From assembly GCA_964270895.1 (NCBI GenBank), contig OZ185440.1: DNA of 64,000 bases; one strand, 5' to 3'. Position 1 is the first letter of the stretch, and each line of letters begins with the position of its first letter. A model generated the notes under the pieces. That model was not told the DNA's origin. It saw nothing but the letters and a program-made list of their open reading frames with translations, and did not search any database. Source of the stretch: Podarcis filfolensis (lineage: Eukaryota). The translations under genes and the position numbers were made by a program. Positions 10,267 to 40,348 of the stretch are shown in pieces.

Positions 10267-11021
10267 TTAAAGGCTTGTCACTAGTTGCATTTGTCCTTCC
10301 CTAACGTCCCCTTCCGGAATACATCCTTCCTTGTTAATGGGAATTATATAGCCGTCACTATTGCCCCTGCTGATTTGATAGTACATCTGAAGCTGATGGC
10401 CAGCTCCAAGGTTTGGCATGCTCTTGTAGTAAATGTCCTCATTCTCGCTCCTCCTGGAGGGAGAGAGGTCTTCCTCGATGTCGGGACTGCTCTCCGGGTA
10501 AGGAGAGTCTCTGAGGTTGGGCATGCTTGTGTACAGAGAGTCTCTGTTGGGGGACTGGAGGTGGTCTTCAACTTCGGCCGTCAGCTGGGACACATAGCTG
10601 TCTGTTCCTTCCGTCTTCACTTTCTTCTGTGGCTGGTACAGAAGGGAGTGAGTCCGTTGGGGAATCAGAGGTGCCTCGAGTTCCTTTTGGTGCAGCTCCA
10701 GGCCGGCGTTATCACTGTGCATCAGAGACGAAGCATCTGCTACAATGGCGTCGTCTTCGCTACTGCTCCCGCCGATCACAGCTTTGATTGGCAATGTGCG
10801 CTCTAGGTTGTGGTTCTTGCTGCTGCCCCGCAGGTTGTTGTGTACTAATTCCGAAATGATCATTTTCTCAAAGGCGGTGTCATTCAGGCTTAGCCCACAG
10901 TCTACAACTTGCACGCTGTCGTTGTAGTCTCCGTTGCGTAAAGAGTAGCTGTTGTTGAAATTACCATTTAGCGGTAGAGTATCCATGGCACTTGTATCCC
11001 TGGCATTGTTCAGTGAATGTC
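10267..11021 (-). CDS. ADGRL2: ADGRL2 terminal coding exon (GHSLNNARD...GQMQLVTSL*, class I PDZ-binding motif), 755 nt including TAA
   Basis: ttctgtttcag|GACAT; ORF 10267..11061 in the track. Confidence 0.98.
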
Positions 11022-14000
11022 CTGAAACAGAAAAGGGACATCTTCGTGTTATTGCCAACACCAGAGCCCAACGTTCTTATTCTATAAAGGTCTTTAATGT
11101 AGTTCAGGACAAAGTTGTACTTGAAAGTAAGACTCGAGGAACGTGAGGAGGGGGATGGGACTTCCCCAAAAGTGTAAGGAGTTACGCACCTTATAGAAGA
11201 GAGAGAGAATTTTACAGAGTAATACTGCTTTTCCGTGGAGCGTCAATGATACTTTGAATTTAGGAATTTGAAAACAAATGGAAAAGGTTCAAATGCAACA
11301 ATTTAGCACCCAGTTGTATAGCTCTTCCCTCAAGGAAAAGAATGGTCACTCCATGCACTTGCATATGTAATGCAAAGCAATCAACATTTATATTTTTAGT
11401 GCAACACCATGATTCGGGGGGGGGGGGGAATGAACGCAACATAATTTGTCCTAAACAACACTAAATTAAAAAAAGAAAAAAAGGAATCAGGTCACATACG
11501 AAACATAAGGCAAATGTGTAACAATAAACCCACGTAACTGGCAAGCAACTATTTTAATATATAGCATTTCTAACATTTCCTCTCGTGTGTGTGGTTTTTA
11601 TTTATTTATCTGAAGATGGAGTAAAGAAAAGAATGGAAAAAAATGGACAAGTACATAGATTTCATGTTAAGCACAGACAGCCACCTCTCACACTAACAGG
11701 GATTGAGGCCCACAAGCACCATNNNNNNNNNNNNNNNNNNNNNNNNNNNNNNNNNNNNNNNNNNNNNNNNNNNNNNNNNNNNNNNNNNNNNNNNNNNNNN
11801 NNNNNNNNNNNNNNNNNNNNNNNNNNNNNNNNNNNNNNNNNNNNNNNNNNNNNNNNNNNNNNNNNNNNNNCTCAGCAACTTAGAGCAAGGGTTCAGCAAA
11901 TTAGATTACTAGCAATAACAGCTCTCTTTTTTTCCCCAATATGATTTTTGTTTTGTTCATTTTTAATTTTTGGTTGCGTTTTAATATTCTCTCCGCCAGC
12001 AACGGTGGCAGGCTTCAGGAGGTCAAAGTTCGCCTGCAGCTTGCATCAGTCACAGTGACAGCACTGAATGAACCAGCATAGTCTGTTAAAGAGTTAGGCC
12101 CACAGACATTATGGGCGTATGGAAGTCAAAAGCAGAGATGTCAAGGGTTTCTCTAAGCATGGGTCACAGAAATTAACCAAAGAAGAGATATTAGCTGTGG
12201 AATGGGAGGAGATTATCAGCCAGGGCCGATATCTTTCAACTGCTGGAGAAATGGAGAAATTGGATACATCTGCGGGAAAGATGAAAAGAAGTTTTGGAAA
12301 GAAGCGGGGGGGGGGGGCGCGACTGGAATTTTATGGTGACATGCTCTTTTTCTATACAAAGAAATTCCATTTTTTCTGGAGACACAAAAGACATGTAAAC
12401 TAAGACATCACAGTGCTTCCCAGGCAAAGAAGAAAAAGAAAGCTATGAAAGAAACTGAATGGCATGTATCATGGATAAAGTTAGATGGTTTGTTAGTGAA
12501 CTTTTAGAAGAATCGCTTTTAGAATTCTAGAGCAATGTTTGGAGGGGGGGGGCGAAATTAAGAAAGAATGAAATACTGTTGTTGGAATGGAACTGACCAC
12601 TGTGAGGCTGCTGCATCACATGCAAGGCTTGGAGTTGTTACAGAGAAATAAAAGATTGTGTGTGCCTCTAAGAACGTTTCCTGTTTTACTTTCAGACTGC
12701 ACTTAAAGCTGCAGCTTAAGCAAGAAAATTCAAGTTGCTTCTATAAAGATAGAAAGATTGGGTTGATGCCCAAAAGTAACTGTTCTTTGGTCAAAGAATA
12801 CTTTTTTTTTTTTAAGTGGAATAACTGCCGCTAATCTTGTATTGTGTTGTTCTAGCCATCCATGCGTACTGAATTAGTTAAAAGGATAGCAATTCTTTGA
12901 AAGCCTCTCTAGGCTTTGATTAAACAACTTTTGTAGCTGGGTATTTTCATATATGTTCCCTGATCTTTCTTGCAAAAGCTTTATCCATATGAAACATATG
13001 GCATTTATAAGAGAGAGGCAACACTTGGACCACATGCCGGCATTAATTTCCCCTCTGAAGGCATTCTCTCTCTCTTTCTCTCTTTTTAATAATCTAATAC
13101 TTTATCCTCTATTAAAGAGATATTGAAGCATATTTAATAATCCAAAATGAATTTTCTATGATGTACTGCAGAGTTAAGCACACTTGAATGTACTTCAACC
13201 AGTTTTAAAGAGGCAAGTTTAGTTGCCCGTGATCAGGTAATTCACTTGAAGTCTTTCATAGCCTGTAGCAAGATTACTGTGGGAATGTGGAAATGTTAAG
13301 TCAATTATTAAGCATTTCTGCTCAACTGTGCTCTGGTTTTAAGCAGCAAATTATTTCAGCATTGGATATCATAAGTTACCAATAGGGCTTGCTACAGACC
13401 TCTTGTGATTTGATTTTTGATTATTATTTTTTTAGATTGTTCTCCGAAAAGCAGTACACATGTACTGTTTGAGCGTGGAAATATTTCATTTGCAAATTGT
13501 GAACCACTTGCCCGCTGAGTCTACTTCATGACCGCTAGTTATATTTTAATTGTGCCCATTAAAAATCATGCTGAAAAAATTTACATTTGATAGGCAAAGT
13601 TAAGTTTTACTCCCATACTTGTCTCTCTGTAGGTTGCTAGAGGAAAGCATAAGGAAAGTAAGAAAACACGAGAATGAACATAGAAACTGCAGTTCAGTTT
13701 TAAAGAATAAGGAACTTTGACATGTAACAACAGCTTTTTATATATAGCTATATAGATATATAACAAAGTATAAAATTCTTAACACAGAATTTCAATTACA
13801 TTCGAGGCTAGTATATTTGATGGCTTATTCCACTAATAATTAATAAAGATGCATTAATTTTTGAACTGGCTCAGAAGTTAAGAAAAGCAGTTGGATAGTA
13901 CAGTATAACAAAGGTGGGGTTAGTAATAAAGCCTTGACATCCTGATGCTACCATCGCTGCCCGTAGCGCTGAATTAATGTACTGGCAACTAAATAATGCA

Positions 14001-20000: not shown

Positions 20001-23000
20001 GACGTGCTTTCGAACTGCTAGGTTGGCAGGAGCAGGGACCGAGCAACGGGAGCTCACCCCATCGCGGGGATTCGAACCGCCAGCCTTCTGATCGGCAAGT
20101 CCTAGGCTCTGTGGTTTAACCCACAGCGCCACCCACGTCCATTACCTATGGTGAGGTTACCATGATGCAAATGCATCGGTGGAGACGATCTGGTGCTCCC
20201 ACTGGTGCATTTGCATCATGCCAACCTCACTCGCTCCTCCACAGTAAACCTAGGTGATGGGAGATTAGGTAAGTGCTGCCATCCCCACTGACCACTACTG
20301 GGAGCTACACTGCTAATTTCAAGGATACATATTTGGGATTGAATTTATTTGGACGGCACAAAATAAAGTTGCATTTCAATGTCTAGTGTGATTAAGTTCA
20401 CAAAAATATATAGCTAAGTGAATGATGCTAATACCCCCAGGGAAATAAGATTAATACTATGCATGTCAAGTCAGAAACAAGTCCAAATCAGTTTAAATGG
20501 AGCTTACTCTCAGGTTTATATAGGTTTACAGCCTAAAAGATTTTAATGGCCTTAGAAATTTAGGCCAGGGGTGAGAATGGGCATAGTATGGGTTTCCTAT
20601 ATAAGCTGCAAAATTTTGTGTGTGTGTGTGACCAGCGACTGTCACCGTCTTTTTAATTCCCCCTGCCTCCCAAATACCACCCCCTGGGGCTGATTTTTGC
20701 CTAATGTCTATACTGCTGTGAATGTACATTATCTGTCAGTGCAGCACATTCCACTGTCATTATTTCTAAATTACAGCTTGTTCAAAACTGAAGGAAGTAA
20801 CAGCACTATCATCTTGTCAGGACTAGAAACATAATAGTTTTCACTTTCACAATTCTATTTCTCTGTTCAATTTAGTGGCCAACTAGTAATAACAGAATAA
20901 AAAGAACACATTAGCTATGTATACAGAAGTAGAATGATATCCAGGGAAAGACACTGAAACTTTTTAAAGCTTAAACGGCAACCTGAATGTTTCTTGCAGG
21001 TATGAAACATCTTGTGCGAAGGTTAAGCTTTATCCATGCTCAACTGGCACTTAATATTGCTTCTGACTACTGCAACATAGTATAAAAACAATACATAATT
21101 CAAATAAGGAATAAAGGCAATGTGCCTTTTGATGTTATTGGGGCTTTTTAAAACAACAACAATTGTTTTATAATAGCCTAGTCTAGGAAGCATTTGTATC
21201 TTGACTATTTTCATTTTAAAATGTTTCAAATATTCATTCCATTCCTCTAATTCAGAGGAAATACCTACTGTCCAATTGGCAATTCCCTATTTCATGACGC
21301 AAATCACTTTGCCTGTATCATAGCAGCCACACTCGAACTGGAGAGTATACCAGTTGTAAAAATAATAATGAAATGCCAACTTCATTTCAAATACAAAAGG
21401 CTACTTCTGATTCAACTCTTATCAAACTACCAGCCAATAATCAGCATGCATTTTATCCAATGATCTCAAATTAATGAAATGTCCTATGAATCAGGGATCC
21501 CAATGTGTGAACAGTAATTTGATTTTCACAGTTCTCTTTAAAATGCTGATTATAAATAGTATTTTACCTATATCTAAGTACAATCCTGCTCTTGGAGGGT
21601 GGAAAGAAAAGAGCCCTGCTGGGGATCAACTTTTGCTAAAAGCTTCACCTCATAATGAACAAATCTACCATCAGCCAGAAAAATCACAGATGAAAAGAAA
21701 GAAGTGCTACAGGGGTTGATCAATGGCTAACAGTGCCTCCCCATCCACCAATACGTTTCAGGGGAGAGGAACTGCTGCTACCCTGTTTTAATAGTTAAAC
21801 ACAATATACTTATTTGTTCCATGCTGCATAACAGAGGCCATAAATGTTTGTTGAACAACAAAACCCATCCATTTTTAGAATGTTTTCTGATTCCATTTAT
21901 TTATTTATTTGCTTTCTAAGCATGGGCATAGCCAGACTTCATGTTAGTGGGGAAAAACCTCTTGTTAGTTAAGTATTTTTATTGATTTATTTGATTTGGG
22001 AGGGCAGCTGCCACCCCCCTCCCCTGCTGCTATGGCCATGTTCTTAAGTGGCTTTGCAGCTTTTTTTAAAGATAGGCACGTTTACATGTCTAGTTTATGG
22101 CCCAACTTGCCTTGCAAGTCATTGGCACTAGGATTAGTAAGAAGTTGCCTGGAAAATAGCCCCATTGATCTCATTTGAGATCTTTGGAATAGACACATAT
22201 AGAATTCTGCTCTGATTCCCCTACATTAAACATGGTAACGTGGAATTTACTACATCCAGACAATCCCAATTATTGGCGTGTGTTCACTTTCGTCTGTGAC
22301 ACTGCCACCTAGGGGGAGTATCGCAAGAATGCAGAAGAATGGGTAAAAGTAACCTAACAATCAGGACTTCTAACAGCAGTTTTGTTGGCAGCTGGATCAC
22401 AAGTTAAACAACAGAGCACTACCTTCCACCTGTCTATGCACTACTGATATATAATGCCTTGTTTAAAAAGAGATACTGGAAATATTTTGGAGATACAGAG
22501 GAAGTGTATATGTGCAATGACTCACTTTCTTTTGGAGTGCACAATGAAAGATGAAAATAAACATTCCTTGGAAAGAATTAAATACTGTGAAGAGGTATGC
22601 CATCACAATGGTCTCATCGTTGACATAAAGCAGTCCAAAAGACCATGTTAGGCCCAGAAGACACAGGAGAGCAAATGCACCTAGGGCCCAAGACCTGAAA
22701 AAGAAAAGCAATTTAAGTAACACTGTCGTTTTGTTTTGTTTTGGTTTTTTTAAAAAAAGCACATTGCAAAATTGTATATTAAAAGTTTACTTGCTGCAAT
22801 TTATTTTTACTAGGTTTTTAGTCATATATAATTATAAATTATTGGCTTTAACCTTTTATCTATTATAGAAAGAGCAATTCCGTTTTAGTTTCCAATGAAA
22901 ACAGCAGCGGTAGTTATTTTAAAATGCAATGCTCTAGTACCAGGTCCAGAAACCCCTTTGCTTTATCTGTATGTATGCGTGTATATTTGGAGATTTGAAG

Positions 23001-26000: not shown

Positions 26001-29000
26001 AGGCTTCCTCCTTGCCATGTGAGAGAAGGAGGAGGAGGGGAGAACGCGGTCGGATGTTTTGCTTGGGTTCATTCCGACTCAATCATATAGTACTGAACTA
26101 AGCATTACATATAAATGAGCCCTGTATGTGGATTCTTTACATGCCTGTGATATAAATAATGTGTAATAAAACAAGGAAATTCTGAACTAGCCAGGTTTTG
26201 AATAAGCCATTATAGATCAAGAGAATAGAAACTCAAGGTGAAATTAATCTGGTTCACATAACAAACTCATCTCAAATGCTGGTGCTGTTATTATCATGGA
26301 GAAAGAACAATTGATTATAGTAAGCATGGGACACCCAAAGCAGAATAATAATTTCACAATGTTAATGACCTAGTTTACATAAGAACTACTTGACAATAAA
26401 CTACAACCAATACTGGGAGTTAAACTGAAGCCAGTTTGATCCCCTGTTGCAACTGCAGGAATTAGCAATGACTGCCCTTTCCACTTCCCTGTAAAGCCAT
26501 AGTGTAAATAATACATTTATTTTGTACTCTATAGCAACCAGGCAGCTCACAATGCTTTCTTTTTTGTCCTTGCTGTTTTGCTGTGTATTCTACCTAGCAG
26601 AATTGGCTATCTTTTCTCCCTTGCAAAATGGCTGCACCCTTACGCAGACAGTAACGCACATCTTTTATATGCATTGTTATGAATATTAACTAAGAATTCT
26701 ATCAAAGGAAGGGACGGTGAGGCCATCATCCTGTAGTTTCTATACCCAAGCCTTCTACACTCTGGTTTATACAAACTGGCTGCCTGCTTTAACTGGAGTG
26801 GCACTGTTTGGTTCTGGCAAAAAGTGTTACAATTTCAGGCTGCTTCTGATTCTGTATTTTGGCTGCCTTGAAATCCAAAATCCTGCTGATGCCACTGTGG
26901 CTGCAGGGATCAGCTGCTGTCCTCCTAACCAGTGAGTCATGGATGCTTCTGAGACACAAATATCTCTTCCTGCAAGCATGCTCATGACTGGGGGGTGGGG
27001 GGTGGAACGGTTTCTGTGATAGCATCACAGCACCCCTGAAGTCACTATAAATTGCCTGGCTGCGACCAGTGTTGGTACAAGATTTCCATGGATACTGTGG
27101 ATGTGGTTGTCCATGCTGCTATGATAATATCTCTTGTTTCTGTTGGCATAGCTTTGCTTTCTACTTTGCTACTAGAGTGTCCAGGATCATGACTTCATTA
27201 CTTCATTTAATGCTGGAATGGTGGCCCTAATTGGGCCTTTAAGCCGTATGCTACTTCCAACTGCATTCCTCAGTGGCAGGAGTTGAGGGTTGCCATAGAT
27301 GCTATAACATCAGCCAGATCCCTGTGGGTATCAGCTGTGGAAACCAATTATGGTTTATGAAGCAAGCCCTCCTACCTCCCTACAGCAAACATCTCTTCCT
27401 CCACCCCCAAAGACAGCAAACACTATCCATAACTGGGGTCAATGATATCATCACACTACTCATGCCAGTAGACAGCTAATCAGATTTGAAAGTGGTTGAA
27501 AGTGCCAAAAGAATCAGCCCAAAGTAGTAGAATCCTTTGGGGGGTGGGGGTCATAAATAAAAACCAGAAAGATAAGGGCAACATTTCTGAATAGTGCCAA
27601 TCCCTAGGGGTGCTGAGTAGAAGAAATGTTCCTAAATTTTGGACATTGTGGATTTTTCCTGGTCTGGAGCATACAGTGTCTTTTGTAGTTGTGTGATTTG
27701 TGCTCATATTGGATTGTGATGGCCATTTGCTATAAACAATAAAATTTATTGATTGATATAAAAAAATGAGTGTCTGCTTAAGCATAGAAAGTGAAAGAAA
27801 GAGAAAGGGTGGCAGAACAAGAAAAACTGCACTTTGATTCAGCTGATAACGGTCCTGTAATATGATGGTAAGTGAAAATGAAAGTCTCTTTAAGAATACA
27901 ACATACTGTAGTTCTAAAGGAAAGTAACTAAGACATATGACAACAAAGCATGAGATACTTGTTCGCCACATCTCTGTGAAATATGATATAATTTAAAGCA
28001 TCAAGCAAACCAAAGAACACTAGTTCGCTCTGTGAAAGCAATATTCAGAAGTCCTGGTTTGCCTATGCTCCAAGTACCCATTAGAAAAGTATTCTCTTTT
28101 TTGCTATTAAACACACACACCTGGTAAGAACATCACCATGTAGGTGAGAGCTCTGGGAAAATGCATCTCCTCTAGATAAATCACCTCTAATCAAAGGGTA
28201 AACAAACTCGGACAGATTGCCATAATATCATGTAACATGGAAAGCAGAAAGGGGCAGAGCAGAGGAACTTGTTGAAGAGCATACACTTACAAGAAATGAC
28301 TTGTACTCGCATTTTATATGAAGAAAATGCTTTGCTTATTCCTCACTCTCGTGATTCTTCTCATTGCTATCTAAGAAATCACACATATTTGTAAAGTGTG
28401 ATTGGGTGATATATATATGACAGTTTAAATGCTTAATTTCTTAAAGAACATTAATATTGTGTGTGCCTTGAAAGCCACTGAATCGATTCCTTCAAGGAAT
28501 TGATTCAAACTGACTCACGGAAAGATTTCTACTGTCATAACACTATAAAATGATCTTGTAATTTTCTTGTGATTAATGATTCCTTTCAAAGGGTGTGAGA
28601 ACAGTGGACCTATTGAATGAGGGTGAAGTGCATGGAGAAGGAGACTTCTGCATGCCTAGTCCCAGCTCACAATATGAGCCGTGCATGAAATCCCAGGCAC
28701 AATACATTGTGAGCACAATACATATATTGTCTATATTTTATTTATTTGTAAACCACAATTTTCCAAAACAATACACTGTTATGAACTCTGTAAACTAAAG
28801 TCAACAAAACCATTTCTACTACTGCACTATTATTATACAAAAGCCATCTGAAATGCTAAAAGGCCCATCCGGTAGCACCAGTGAAACTGGGTGTGGTGTA
28901 GGATAGTGATATTTTGGATATAAGCTTTGTTATATTAGATTGTGAACAAGCTTTGTGCCTGCATATGCAACCCCTTTCCTCGATGCAATTAAAGCAAGAC

Positions 29001-32000
29001 ATCATTTACTTAGCCATAGTTTCTCATTGTGTCTGAACTGGGAAACCATGGTTATCAGGTACAGAAAAAGTTAGGATCTTAAACCAACTTTTTCCTTCCA
29101 GTAGCACCTTAAAGACCAACTAAGTTAGTTCTTGGTATGAGCTTTCGTGTGCATGCACACTTCTTCAGATACACACGAAAGCTCATACCAAGAACTAACT
29201 TAGTTGGTCTTTAAGGTGCTACTGGAAGGAAAAAAATTTTTTTGTTTTGACTATGGCAGACCAACACGGCTACCTATCTGTAACTGGAACTATGGAAGGC
29301 ACCACATTGAGCCGCATGAAATGGAAGTCCATCAACCTCACCAAGAAACTTGCACAGGTACAGACTGATATCTTCTTTCTTACTAAATGCAAGAACCTGG
29401 ACATTATACCCAAGGGTCTTAGAATTAAGAACCCTCTACAATCCACGTATCCCACTGAATATGCAAGAAAACTATGCAACACTTTCTCTAAGAAGCTGCT
29501 CAAACATCTGATCGGGTGTATCTGAAGAAGTGTGCATGCACACGAAAGCTCATACCAAGAACTAACTTAGTTGGTCTTTAAGGTGCTACTGGAAGGAAAT
29601 TTTTTTTTTGTTTCAACTTCAAGCTGTGTTTTGAGAACTTGGTAACCATAGTTTCCCAGTTCAGATATAATGGGAAAGGACAGTTGATTGAAGTGTTCCT
29701 GGTGTAATTGAGAAAGGGGCAGAGAAGAGGCAATGTGTATGGAGAAAAGGATTTCAAAACCAAGATGTAATAAGCCCAACCTGGCACAATGTCACCTTTA
29801 TGCTGATCACCTCTTAAGTGGCAGTAGTGGGGAACTGGTTTCAGTTCAGGGTTAGTTTCAGTTCTCCTGCTTCCACCAAAAGTGGTTGTTTTAATTTGCT
29901 ATATGTCACTCTGAATAATCAAATAGTGGCATACAAATGAAGATAAACCAAACTAATAAACAAGTGAATGGTGTATTGCAGACATGGCATCTGCAGTTAT
30001 GGAAACATGTACTTGAATCACGAAAGTTTATCACATTATGGTGAATTCATTTTTCTAGGCTGTGGTAAGCATAAAGTATCAGACATCCCCTCTCCATACC
30101 GCCAGCACAAGAACTATGCCTAAATTTCTAAAACTTCCATTATTCACACTGAGGATTTGCCAATACTTTGACCAATGGATGAAATCCCAATGCCTATTAT
30201 GCTATCGCTGCAAAGTTGCTTTGTCTTGGATGGACAGTATCACTAAAGAGAAGTAATGTCATCTCTTTAGAGATCATATGTTTCCCTATTCATGAAACAG
30301 AACCACATCCAGAACGCTTTGGGTCAGTCATCTTCCTGCAGGCGATTCCTAAGGCTCATGAGAATCTCTCTCAGGAGCTCAACACAAATGACAAGTCTAA
30401 CCAACCTCGAACCTCCTTGAATTATATTAAAGCAAAAAGAGGCAAAACACAAAAAGTCAAAAGTGTGGGCTTTTCTGACCAGAATTTGCCAGAGTGCACT
30501 GTTTGTTTTATTAAAGCCATCAAGCTGCTCAATTGAATTACATTGAGCTTAGCAGCTTAAAATTCATTCCACACAGCCTGAAGTGCTGACATGGATATGA
30601 TAAGACAGAAGAACAGAAACACCACTCCGAGGTAACCTAGCTGAACTGCACATGTTCTGACCCTGTTTGTCCTCCCTGGAGCTTTTGTTACCTGGCAGAG
30701 GCAAGCTCTAAAATTGCTCTTCTATCTCGCAGATCCTTGCTCTTAGCCAAGCAGAAGCCTATTCCTCTCTGGGACTGGCAGCCCGAGAAGTGTTGTCTGA
30801 AGGAGCCCTTCGAAAGGAGTGCGCAAAGCTGAACTCTCCCTGAACTTAATTAATTATTAAGGATGCAGATGGAGCTGTCCAAATGATAAGAACAGCTCCT
30901 GACGTGTCATGATCCAAGCTTTCATTAAATCATTTCAGGCATACTAATGGCGTTCCACTGCTCATTACTCTCACACATGCTTTCTTCCATAGATACAATA
31001 ACCCCGGTGCCCCGTAGTCGGAAAGGAAAGTCAACCGCTCTCCTTCAAGGATCCGAACGCCGCATATTTCCTAAAGCGCCAAGAACGGGCAAGGTTATTT
31101 GGGAAGGCGGTCCTACCTAACCTTAAGAGGGAAAGCATCGGGTGGGTGGGCGTATGGCAAGGAAAGGGAGGGTAGTGATATTTACTTTAAATGCAAAAAA
31201 CAGCAAGGCGTGCAATAAATAAAAAGGCTGTGATCAAGAAAGACAGAAATACATAGTCAACAACGCAGTGCAGAGCTGCATGTGCTTGATCCCATTCAAA
31301 ACAATGAGATCCTAATTCTGACCAATATGCCCAATTCTTATTTTTAAGGAAGGCAGAAAAGCTTATATAAAAATCGGTGTGTGTATCAAAAATTCCGATA
31401 AAAGGACGAAGTCAATGGAACGTCCGGTTGCAGATTTCCCCTTGAACACTTACTGTTCCCAAAGAACACAATTTTCTTCCAGTTCCTTTAAAACAAATAG
31501 ATAACATTATACTGCCCATCTCCTTCCCTCAAATTAGCAGCCAATTTCAACAAGATCATGAGTGCCTAAATTTATATTAGATTATCATGGCCACAGAATC
31601 TTATCTGAGAATGTACTAAATAAATCTTTTGCTTGAATTACAATGGACTAAAGCCTCCAGATCATATAAATGCTGATAGCGGTCCATTAAATCACCGACA
31701 CTCAGGCTTTTATTTTCTGCAGCTTATCAATTAAGATCAGTATAGGCTATAATTTATCTAACTGTTCCTTAATGGGTGTATTAGTCTTTCCCCCCAAAGG
31801 AGTCTAAAATTTTGTGTATGTGGGCTGGAGGTGGGAAAAGAATAAGATCTCAAATTCTAAAGCCAGTAAATTAAAACTGTGTGATTGTTCTTAATTCAGT
31901 GTACACATCTGTGTTCTGTGTACACATGATAACAGTTATGCACAAGGTAACATATTGAGAGGGACTGGAAACACTCCGACGAATATGTGATGGAGGCAAG

Positions 32001-38000: not shown

Positions 38001-40348
38001 ACCTGATTGGAATTTGCACACAGCCTTGCCATTCTCGTACCAATAAAGCTTTCTGGTGCTATTTTAGTCTGTCGGGGGCTCTGACAGCTAACACGCTTAA
38101 AAAAAATCAAAAAATTGCCTGAAACACTCAGGTCACTAGCAATTACTTACGCATTTTGCGCTCCATAGCTGGAGTAGTCGATAGCTGCCGAGACACCAAC
38201 AACAGTGGCAGGAAAGAGGTAGCCAGCAACATAGTAGTACTTCTTCCTAGAATATTCACTTTCAAATACTTCTACTAACATGAGATAGAGCTGCACCCCT
38301 TCTAGGCACATCCAGGCAAAGGCTGCCAGGAAGAAAAAGTGTAAGAGGCCTGCAAATATTGGGCATGCAATCTGCAAAGAAAAAGAAACAATCAAATGCA
38401 AGGTGCAACACTTTTCAACCTTCCCACTTCATCTGATGTATTCAGAAAACGAAATAATGTGGATGTTAACAGCTTGGTTTGTAATGGCAGCATACTGTAT
38501 ATGCAGTAATTGAACCCCCCCCCCAATACACACACACACACACTGCCCCCCAAACATAAAACTTCATATTCATAACTACTGAAAACTGTATTGTGTTCCC
38601 AGTAGCTGCAGCTTCTACTCTCTTGCACTCTGTGAGTTAAGATATGGAAAGTATGTGCCTATTAGCATTCTTTGACGCAATGGAATATCAAGTGTGGCAA
38701 GCAGTCCATTAATTTTTGGTAGCGCAATGTTAACACTCTGCTGTAAGGCTTATATTGCAGATGATTTGGTACAGGAAGATAAAGAGCCCCAGCTACTAGA
38801 TGTATTATTTATACCTTCTGTTGAAAATTCTTATGCCTCTGTCAGAATATTCCATTTCCCTTTAAATATCAAATATCGTTGCTTTTTCTATTTTTAGGAA
38901 GATCTGCTATCATATCACTAGCCACACTCTGTAGATGAGTGCAGAACAAAATCCTACCGACTGACTCAATTCTAAGGGCAGCTTATTTTAGAAAAACCAT
39001 GGGTTCAGCCTCATGCCTTGAGATTTAGGAAAAGGCTAATCTGAAATGAGAAATGAAGACACACAAAGGAAAAGAATTCCATAGCTTTCTATCTCTTAAG
39101 GATAGGAATGTATTATTTCTGTGTAACATTCTCCTGTATCTGGGGGCGCTAGGTACACCTACTGGACAAGAGGCAGGTTTATCTAAGAACCCACTGCAGC
39201 CAATGGGGAGTTAAGCATTTAACTGTTTCCTTAGTTCCATTTGTCCCAATGGAGCTGCAGAATCTGTTTCACTGGATTACAATAAATGATCTTGAACAAT
39301 GATCATAAATAACAGAAACTACCATACATCAATCTGAATTGTCATCGCTTGTACACTTATGATCTCCCTCCCTCCCTAATACACACACAATATTGAAGGA
39401 AAATCTTGTTGGTCAATAGGTGGCTTAAATGCTAAACAATACCTGACAAGAAACTCTCTGACAGGCTTATTAAGCTTCTACTGGTTCCCAACTTAACGAC
39501 ATTGAACAGGCATGTTTTCTTGCTTTCTCTACATCAGAGGTTGCCAATGCAACACCTGTGGGTGCCAGCGGACCCTCCTGCACCTTCTATGGCATCAATA
39601 TTTTTTGTTGTTTAATCTAAACTGGTGTAAGTCTTTGTGGCGTAGTAAATTCTAAGCCATATATAGTGGTAAACTCAATCTTCTATGCAAAATGAGGGCT
39701 TCTGCATCACATTTTTAAAAATCTTAACGCTCCAGAGCTGAATGAGATAGTTCCATCTTTGCATCTAAATAAGAAGTTTCAGGCATTAGCTGTTCAAGCT
39801 TTTCTCTGCCTGCCATTATTTCCTGAGTAACCTGCCCGTCCATGGGGAAAGTGGCTAAAGGTTGCATCAAAAAAGCAGACAACTGAGAAACTTCTTTTGG
39901 CCATCAAATACTTTACTGCTACCATTACTTTCAGTGAGGTATCTTCAGATGTGTGTTAAATATAGAGGGCTTACCTTGTACTCTGTCTTATCGATGCCTA
40001 TTAGGAAAATAAATTCTGCAATGAGGAGGTTGATGCAAAGGTTCTTGTGAATTGTGTTTCGGTCACTTTGAAGGCCGCGGAAGAAACAGAAAGTGAAGAT
40101 GCAAATTGCCAGGCAGACAAGGGAAATGACAATCCCTACCCAGGTGATGACAGTGAGGAGTAAGCCATGCATTCCATTGTACTGGAAATGATGAAGAGTA
40201 AAGAAAATTAGTGTGGTCACTGATCAATACAAAACTAAAATACCATGTTTGTTGCTGACACTTAGAAATTCCAACTTTGTTCAAAGGACAGCACAACAGC
40301 CATTGGGAGTTACAGAGATAAACACTGGAGATGAACTAATTTTGAAAA

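Follow-up and report, generated by a model that had tools for sequence, protein, structure and literature searches.

An intron of ADGRL2 (latrophilin-2) very probably houses a young, lineage-specific and non-autonomous insertion, ~520 nt long, of a Penelope-like element (PLE), a composite of three cDNA-derived pieces whose hammerhead ribozyme motifs are most likely silent. It was found within a 64-kb window, that is, the whole stretch of DNA that was analyzed and to which all positions refer. Two of the pieces would correspond to full arms of the pseudo-LTR of the element, one inverted and one direct (Table 1), and the one between them would run from the middle of a ribozyme, through the leader, to codon 74 of the open reading frame (ORF), at about 29172-29513. 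The clean boundaries of this species-specific insertion and the empty site of the relatives indicate that a PLE family has been very recently active in the lizard lineage, and the three-piece anatomy and its junctions fit a recently proposed PLE mechanism that uses internal reverse transcriptase (RT) start sites and both target strands. All the components of the finding are already in the literature, where the class has been described since 2014, and the locus is a new copy of a very abundant repeat that, on its own, is of little consequence.

Anatomy of the insertion

The hexamer CAACTT is found on both sides of the element and, because contigs with an empty site are also available (see below), the insertion could be delimited as 29091-29613, flanked by a 6-bp target-site duplication. 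Its components are listed in Table 1.

Table 1. Components of the insertion and hammerhead motifs, in window coordinates
Feature	Position	Strand	Remarks
Target-site duplication CAACTT, left copy	29085..29090	.	Empty-site contigs; same hexamer at 29614-29619
Inverted full arm (ribozyme and 3' tail)	29091..29174	-	Outer end in A-run adjoining the duplication
Minimal type I hammerhead motif	29135-29172	-	Host pre-mRNA strand; predicted cut between 29139 and 29138
Half copy	29172..29247	+	Stem II 3' strand, GAAA, AGCU, cut site 29184|29185, tail, A/T run
Leader with conserved AC-rich motif (29261-29279)	29248..29291	+	
PLE ORF, first 74 codons (N-terminal domain)	29292..29513	+	79 homologues
Two G between codon 74 and full arm	29514..29515	+	Match neither the ORF family contigs nor the arm
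Full direct arm (ribozyme, tail, T-run)	29516..29613	+	Ends GTTT adjoining the duplication
Minimal type I hammerhead motif	29518-29555	+	Predicted cut 29551|29552
Target-site duplication CAACTT, right copy	29614..29619	.	

The half copy has no 5' strand of helix I, no CUGAAGA box and no 5' half of stem II, and its junction with the inverted arm is an ambiguous overlap of 3 to 5 nt (CAC/ACAC). At the other end of the middle piece, the two G that precede the direct arm are probably non-templated, since other copies of the arm start at 29516-29518 and the ORF contigs diverge after 29513. The frame stays open over 29292-29525, and its stop codon (TGA, 29523-29525) falls inside the CUGA box of the plus-strand ribozyme, an accident of the junction with the ribozyme arm. 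An earlier first-pass annotation, made from the sequence without database searches, had described the element as a relic, a term that does not suit it: this is a young copy, dead on arrival, with an ORF broken by its joining after codon 74 to a ribozyme arm and not by decay.

The 3' end of the insertion itself is equivalent to 29247, and many genomic copies end 38 nt further, at ~29285, a spread that matches the optional 30- to 40-bp "tail" of PLEs (PMC8557442). This tail is one of the hallmarks of the group, together with a partial tandem that forms the pseudo-LTR and an inverted, 5'-truncated upstream copy (PMC8557442). The initial suggestion that the inverted 5' segment is typical of PLEs agrees with these hallmarks.

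Hammerhead motifs and repeats

Both full copies of the motif have the layout GTAT-CTGAAGA-A-GTGTGCATGCACAC-GAAA-GC-TC-ATAC. The first-pass annotation had reported two identical 38-nt motifs on opposite strands and a half copy 367 nt upstream of the plus-strand one, and both observations were reproduced. The pattern search recovered the two motifs with 0 mismatches, and the 34-nt core pattern is present exactly twice in the window (29522-29555 on the plus strand and 29168-29135 on the minus strand, also with 0 mismatches) for a chance expectation of 0. The half copy is part of a direct repeat (29169-29242 and 29536-29609) with a spacing of 367 nt. The 38-nt tail located 3' of the motif appears three times, at 29098-29135 on the minus strand and at 29188-29225 and 29555-29592 on the plus strand. 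Inverted arms connect 29091-29178 with 29512-29599 (88 nt, 99%) and 29089-29154 with 29169-29234 (66 nt, 98%), and the full arms match each other without differences over 84 nt (the reverse complement of 29091-29174 is 29516-29599).

We constructed our own descriptor from the published features of minimal hammerhead ribozymes (min-HHRs): CUGANGA, an optional extra nucleotide, a stem II with G10.1-C11.1, GAAA, a palindromic 15.2-16.2, UH and a 4-bp helix I. Applied to the window, as the first-pass annotation had suggested, it recovered both full copies and nothing else, and it gave 0 matches in 200 simulated 64-kb sequences. Both copies have the conserved core (C3-A9, G12-A14, A15.1-U16.1 and H17) in the form of CUGAAGA, GAAA and U-C; the extra nucleotide separating position 9 from 10.1 is the A at 29529, followed by the pair G29530-C29543 and the palindrome AGCU at 29547-29550.

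This is the published architecture of PLE min-HHRs (PMC4209133), to which the motif had been ascribed at first sight. The likeness includes the CUGANGA, GAAA and UH boxes, the single unpaired nucleotide between A9 and G10.1, the G10.1-C11.1 pair, the palindromic 15.2-16.2 (AGCU) without a helix III hairpin, the 4-bp helix I, the position in the pseudo-LTR, the many solitary copies and the pairs on opposite strands (PMC4209133). The main difference is stem II, a 5-bp hairpin within a 14-nt perfect palindrome here and 7 to 8 bp long in the schistosome families (PMC4209133). The arrangement of the motifs at the locus had been considered possibly undescribed; however, min-HHR pairs located 100 to 700 bp apart on opposite strands were already in the literature, which also records the class in turtle and snakes (PMC4209133).

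The Rfam search that had been proposed as a check gave no hammerhead (types I, II and III, HH9 and HH10) at the gathering score or at E values up to 10, as expected from models that include a helix III hairpin, absent from these motifs. The ribozyme call, for a motif that Rfam does not recognize, is based on the logic of the published descriptor and on covariation in just three elements (see below). Matches to miRNA precursors were all that Rfam gave, and they were discarded as spurious because a long inverted repeat triggers them. A sensitive blastn search of the unit against the 64-kb window retrieved no additional diverged copies, and the exact ribozyme sequence had no match in the searchable literature. 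An AUG in the loop of stem II (window 29536-29565) opens a frame of only nine codons (MHTKAHTKN-stop).

Affiliation of the ORF

The 77-codon ORF (29292-29522) retrieved 79 proteins at E values up to 1e-3 in an exhaustive HMMER search, the matches being nearly always N-terminal. One of the homologues (P0051, 881 amino acids) has an RVT_1 domain at 370-559 and a GIY-YIG domain with 22.9 bits (cutoff, 22.6), and this combination of RT and GIY-YIG is the defining architecture of PLEs. The ORF fragment had been called PLE-like from its translation, and its homology to the N termini of RT plus GIY-YIG proteins supports that view. The copy in the window carries neither RT nor EN itself, just the first 74 codons; the protein alignment ends at residue 74, after which the homologues go on with LRNHLIxxLYS... 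and the window with HLI-GCI-stop. With Pfam, the 92-amino-acid ORF had just a subthreshold match to Nucleolin_bd, but the copy of Pfam used seems to be without PF28514 (DUF8422), a family that is annotated on homologues of the ORF.

The nucleotide sequences around the homologues were also informative. In the locus that codes for P0051 (L001), positions 136-172 form a min-HHR whose distance to the downstream ATG is 88 nt, compared to 107 nt from cut site to ATG in the window, and another is borne by a locus coding for a different homologue (L005). The window, L001 and L005 do not differ in the catalytic boxes (except N7 and H17), in the extra A that follows A9, or in G10.1, C11.1 and the G at 15.2, and in this small sample helix I is fully compensatory (GUAU/AUAC, ACAC/GUGU and GUCC/GGAC), as is stem II. 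The AC-rich motif of the leader recurs upstream of the ORF in L001 and in two other loci, L002 and L004. No ribozyme was found within 230 nt upstream of the ORF start in L002 (from a turtle), L003 and L004, the first of which is an inverted or truncated copy. In L002 (positions 1270-1500, turtle assembly GCA_000344595.1), the AC-rich motif is part of a head-to-head palindrome upstream of the first exon of the P0002 gene model. This palindrome is another inverted PLE junction, and the predicted 183-amino-acid P0002 "protein" is probably a misannotated PLE fragment spliced over 30 kb.

Among the known elements, Poseidon_Ac (PAc) from Anolis carolinensis also has its ribozyme at the junction between the pseudo-LTR and the ORF (PMC11167929). 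However, in PAc the ORF begins within stem II, 26 nt ahead of the cut site, whereas in the window the ATG is found 107 nt after it; lizard PLE families thus differ in where the ORF lies with respect to the ribozyme.

Age and abundance

To date and quantify the insertion, contigs from four public runs were aligned to the region 28600-30100. These contigs show neither RNA ends nor strand, and the RNA labels of some of the runs are guesses. In organisms B and C, two related species, one contig each runs from 29084 straight into 29614, i.e., they have the empty site, with flanks up to ~4% different from the window. Contigs from organism A span both insertion junctions with 0 differences and represent the filled site. 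The ORF part has 0 differences to multicopy contigs with a depth of ~870 to 1130, compared to ~30 for the single-copy flanks. The empty site in the relatives, the identical arms and the identity of the ORF to multicopy contigs indicate that the family was active after the split of the species. The insertion is lineage specific and young, and the empty site in two related species bears out the recent age that the first-pass annotation had attributed to it.

Contig depth also indicates that the ribozyme arm is massively repeated: its summed depth in organism A is ~1e6 versus ~30 for the flanks, a value that reflects massive repetition and is not equivalent to the true number of copies. The ORF part is ~100-fold less deep than the arm. 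Many contigs enter from unrelated sequence just before 29516-29518 (29172 in the case of the inverted arm), a large number exit right after 29285 or past ~29606-29613, and head-to-head joints between 29172 and 29518 (29172|29518) are common. The multicopy contigs over the ORF part (29417-29513 or 29263-29513) all stop matching at 29513 in all four runs, a break that coincides exactly with the end of the protein homology.

Variants of the family were observed at 29146, 29176 and 29177 (10 to 17% of the summed depth) as C-to-T or G-to-A changes at the CpG of C11.1-G12. These variants in the ribozyme core are consistent with a neutral, methylation-driven decay of copies that are dead and not with selection acting on the ribozyme.

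Origin of the insertion

The target-site duplication and the empty site fit an insertion by target-primed reverse transcription, the mechanism that we infer here. The common start of both full arms, GTGTATCTGAAG, would represent the defined 5' end of the template RNA, although the abrupt 5' limit at 29516-29518 could also be due to something else. The pieces might have been joined during target-primed reverse transcription through priming from the two cut target strands, through template switching or through both, with the middle piece presumably brought in by a template switch; the order of events in this three-piece assembly is our reconstruction.

The best available comparison is the Poseidon element of Anolis, which has two internal RT start sites and whose protein, in vitro, cuts the two target strands and also extends them (PMC11167929). 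As in the family described here, the 3' ends of PAc are found at two sites ~38 nt apart, 60 to 100 nt past the cut site and near an AC-rich motif, and the in vitro use of both target strands would explain the inverted arms (PMC11167929). A more specific scenario, possible but still tentative, is that the locus is a snapshot of PLE integration in which two full-length cDNAs of a short capped pseudo-LTR RNA, one per cut strand, met head to head. This RNA would start at GTGTATCTGAAG, just before helix I, and a template switch into an ORF-bearing RNA would have left two extra G at the switch point. If the common start position and the head-to-head joints were general throughout the genome, as the contig data hint, they would lend in vivo backing to the priming from two strands that the Anolis element shows in vitro, and they would account for the tens of thousands of solitary ribozyme arms as by-products of a family that is still active.

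The insertion also resembles the animal non-LTR retrozymes (PMC7229834; bioRxiv 10.64898/2026.07.22.740005), short non-autonomous units with a type I hammerhead and an origin in PLE pseudo-LTRs, present in reptiles. The 367-nt unit (arm, leader and 74 codons) could accordingly be seen as the monomer of a non-autonomous, retrozyme-like family spreading in the form of tandem or circular RNA. The insertion comprises 1.2 units in tandem, each with a ribozyme motif (the second one being a half), the unit length falls within the 51 to 972 bp reported for those retrozymes, and the stretch that is sufficient as RT template in the Anolis element (PMC11167929) is included in the unit. However, retrozymes are tandem arrays of complete ribozyme-bearing units, and here one full and one half motif are direct and an inverted arm is added to them. 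Furthermore, the multicopy ORF contigs leave the putative unit at 29513 in every run, the depth of the ORF part is two orders of magnitude below that of the arm, and none of the best-supported joints listed connects 29513 to 29516, those listed being head to head (29172|29518). We consider a retrozyme-like monomer unlikely on these grounds, and the composite of three cDNA-derived pieces is the interpretation that we retain.

The possibility that the 29513/29516 junction is a splice (of an intron from codon 74 to the ribozyme), suggested by the sequence in front of the arm in some contigs of organism B, was rejected because the homologues continue across codon 74 with no break resembling a donor. 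In 17 contigs of organism B, this sequence is rather uniform; it ends in a pyrimidine-rich stretch plus CA and, together with G29516, looks like either a 3' splice site or an initiator-like TCAGT. In Drosophila virilis, the 5' edge of helix I is where an intron of the Penelope element ends (PMC4209133).

Predicted behavior of the ribozymes at the locus

Min-HHRs do not have a helix III of their own and are thought to act as dimers; they cleave poorly in vitro, and for a schistosome min-HHR a weak cleavage as dimer was recorded in vitro (PMC4209133). Cleavage of the Anolis element was obtained only with the protein of the element, and no RNA ends were seen at the cut site (PMC11167929). In the insertion, the plus strand contains one full copy and a substrate-only half copy, both duplexed with the inverted arm. 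Folding of the whole insert gave -227 and -249 kcal/mol for the two strands, with z values of about -18.5, and every ribozyme sequence sits in duplexes of 84 to 88 bp on either strand. The 106-nt plus-strand arm folded alone has a z value of -0.53, i.e., no special stability as a monomer.

On a plus-strand RNA, a functional pairing, as proposed in the first-pass annotation, could be imagined between the half copy (AGCU, C17 and AUAC, 29180-29188) and the core of the full copy located 367 nt downstream, making one active unit that would cut at 29184|29185. The hybrid has a valid trans-hammerhead geometry, with 4 bp in both helix III (AGCU/AGCU) and helix I (GUAU/AUAC) and all the core nucleotides present, and also in its favor are the published hypothesis of a dimeric action of min-HHRs and the weak schistosome cleavage. 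However, the predicted energy of this hybrid is just -8.3 kcal/mol, mostly due to the stem II hairpin, and any RNA that includes 29091-29174 locks the half and full copies into duplexes of 66 to 88 bp with -112.9 kcal/mol (the value for the hairpin 29089-29234) or stronger. Between two molecules, the palindromic stem II favors a non-catalytic 14-bp dimer (-30.6 kcal/mol) over the double-hammerhead dimer (-11.1 kcal/mol). In addition, the plus strand is antisense to ADGRL2, and the published min-HHRs either cleave poorly or need the protein of the element. An active half/full unit is, for all these reasons, very improbable. The folding models suggest instead that, at this locus, the motifs are most probably carried along as silent passengers, and ribozyme searches should take into account that a hammerhead core may look intact in a host intron and still be a caged passenger.

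Host gene and flanking DNA

ADGRL2 is encoded on the minus strand and has exons on both sides of the insertion, which is therefore intronic. Its transmembrane exons are found at 22463-22762 and 39945-40220, and the ORF of the last exon (10267-11061) ends in LVTSL. The pre-mRNA strand of the gene carries one sense motif, that of the inverted arm, and two antisense copies.

This sense hammerhead motif, combined with an inverted repeat of 66 to 88 bp on the pre-mRNA strand, might bring to mind a takeover by the host, in which the ribozyme or the long hairpin would regulate the processing or editing of the ADGRL2 pre-mRNA or the production of small RNAs. However, the absence of the insertion from two related species makes a conserved function impossible, the motif is one among very many copies, and the sense copy is caged in a duplex without a sense partner in cis. 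We regard such a role as extremely unlikely, and the reading as a recent insertion with silent motifs is maintained.

The host DNA around the insertion contains a 49-nt inverted repeat (29020-29068 and 29629-29677, 82% complementary). The contig depth of this flanking palindrome is slightly elevated, at ~6 to 13 times that of the flanks, and it is also present in the empty-site contigs of the relatives; the element landed in the ~30-nt center of an older palindromic low-copy repeat. A run of 281 N letters is located at ~11650-11930, near the terminal exon region of ADGRL2.
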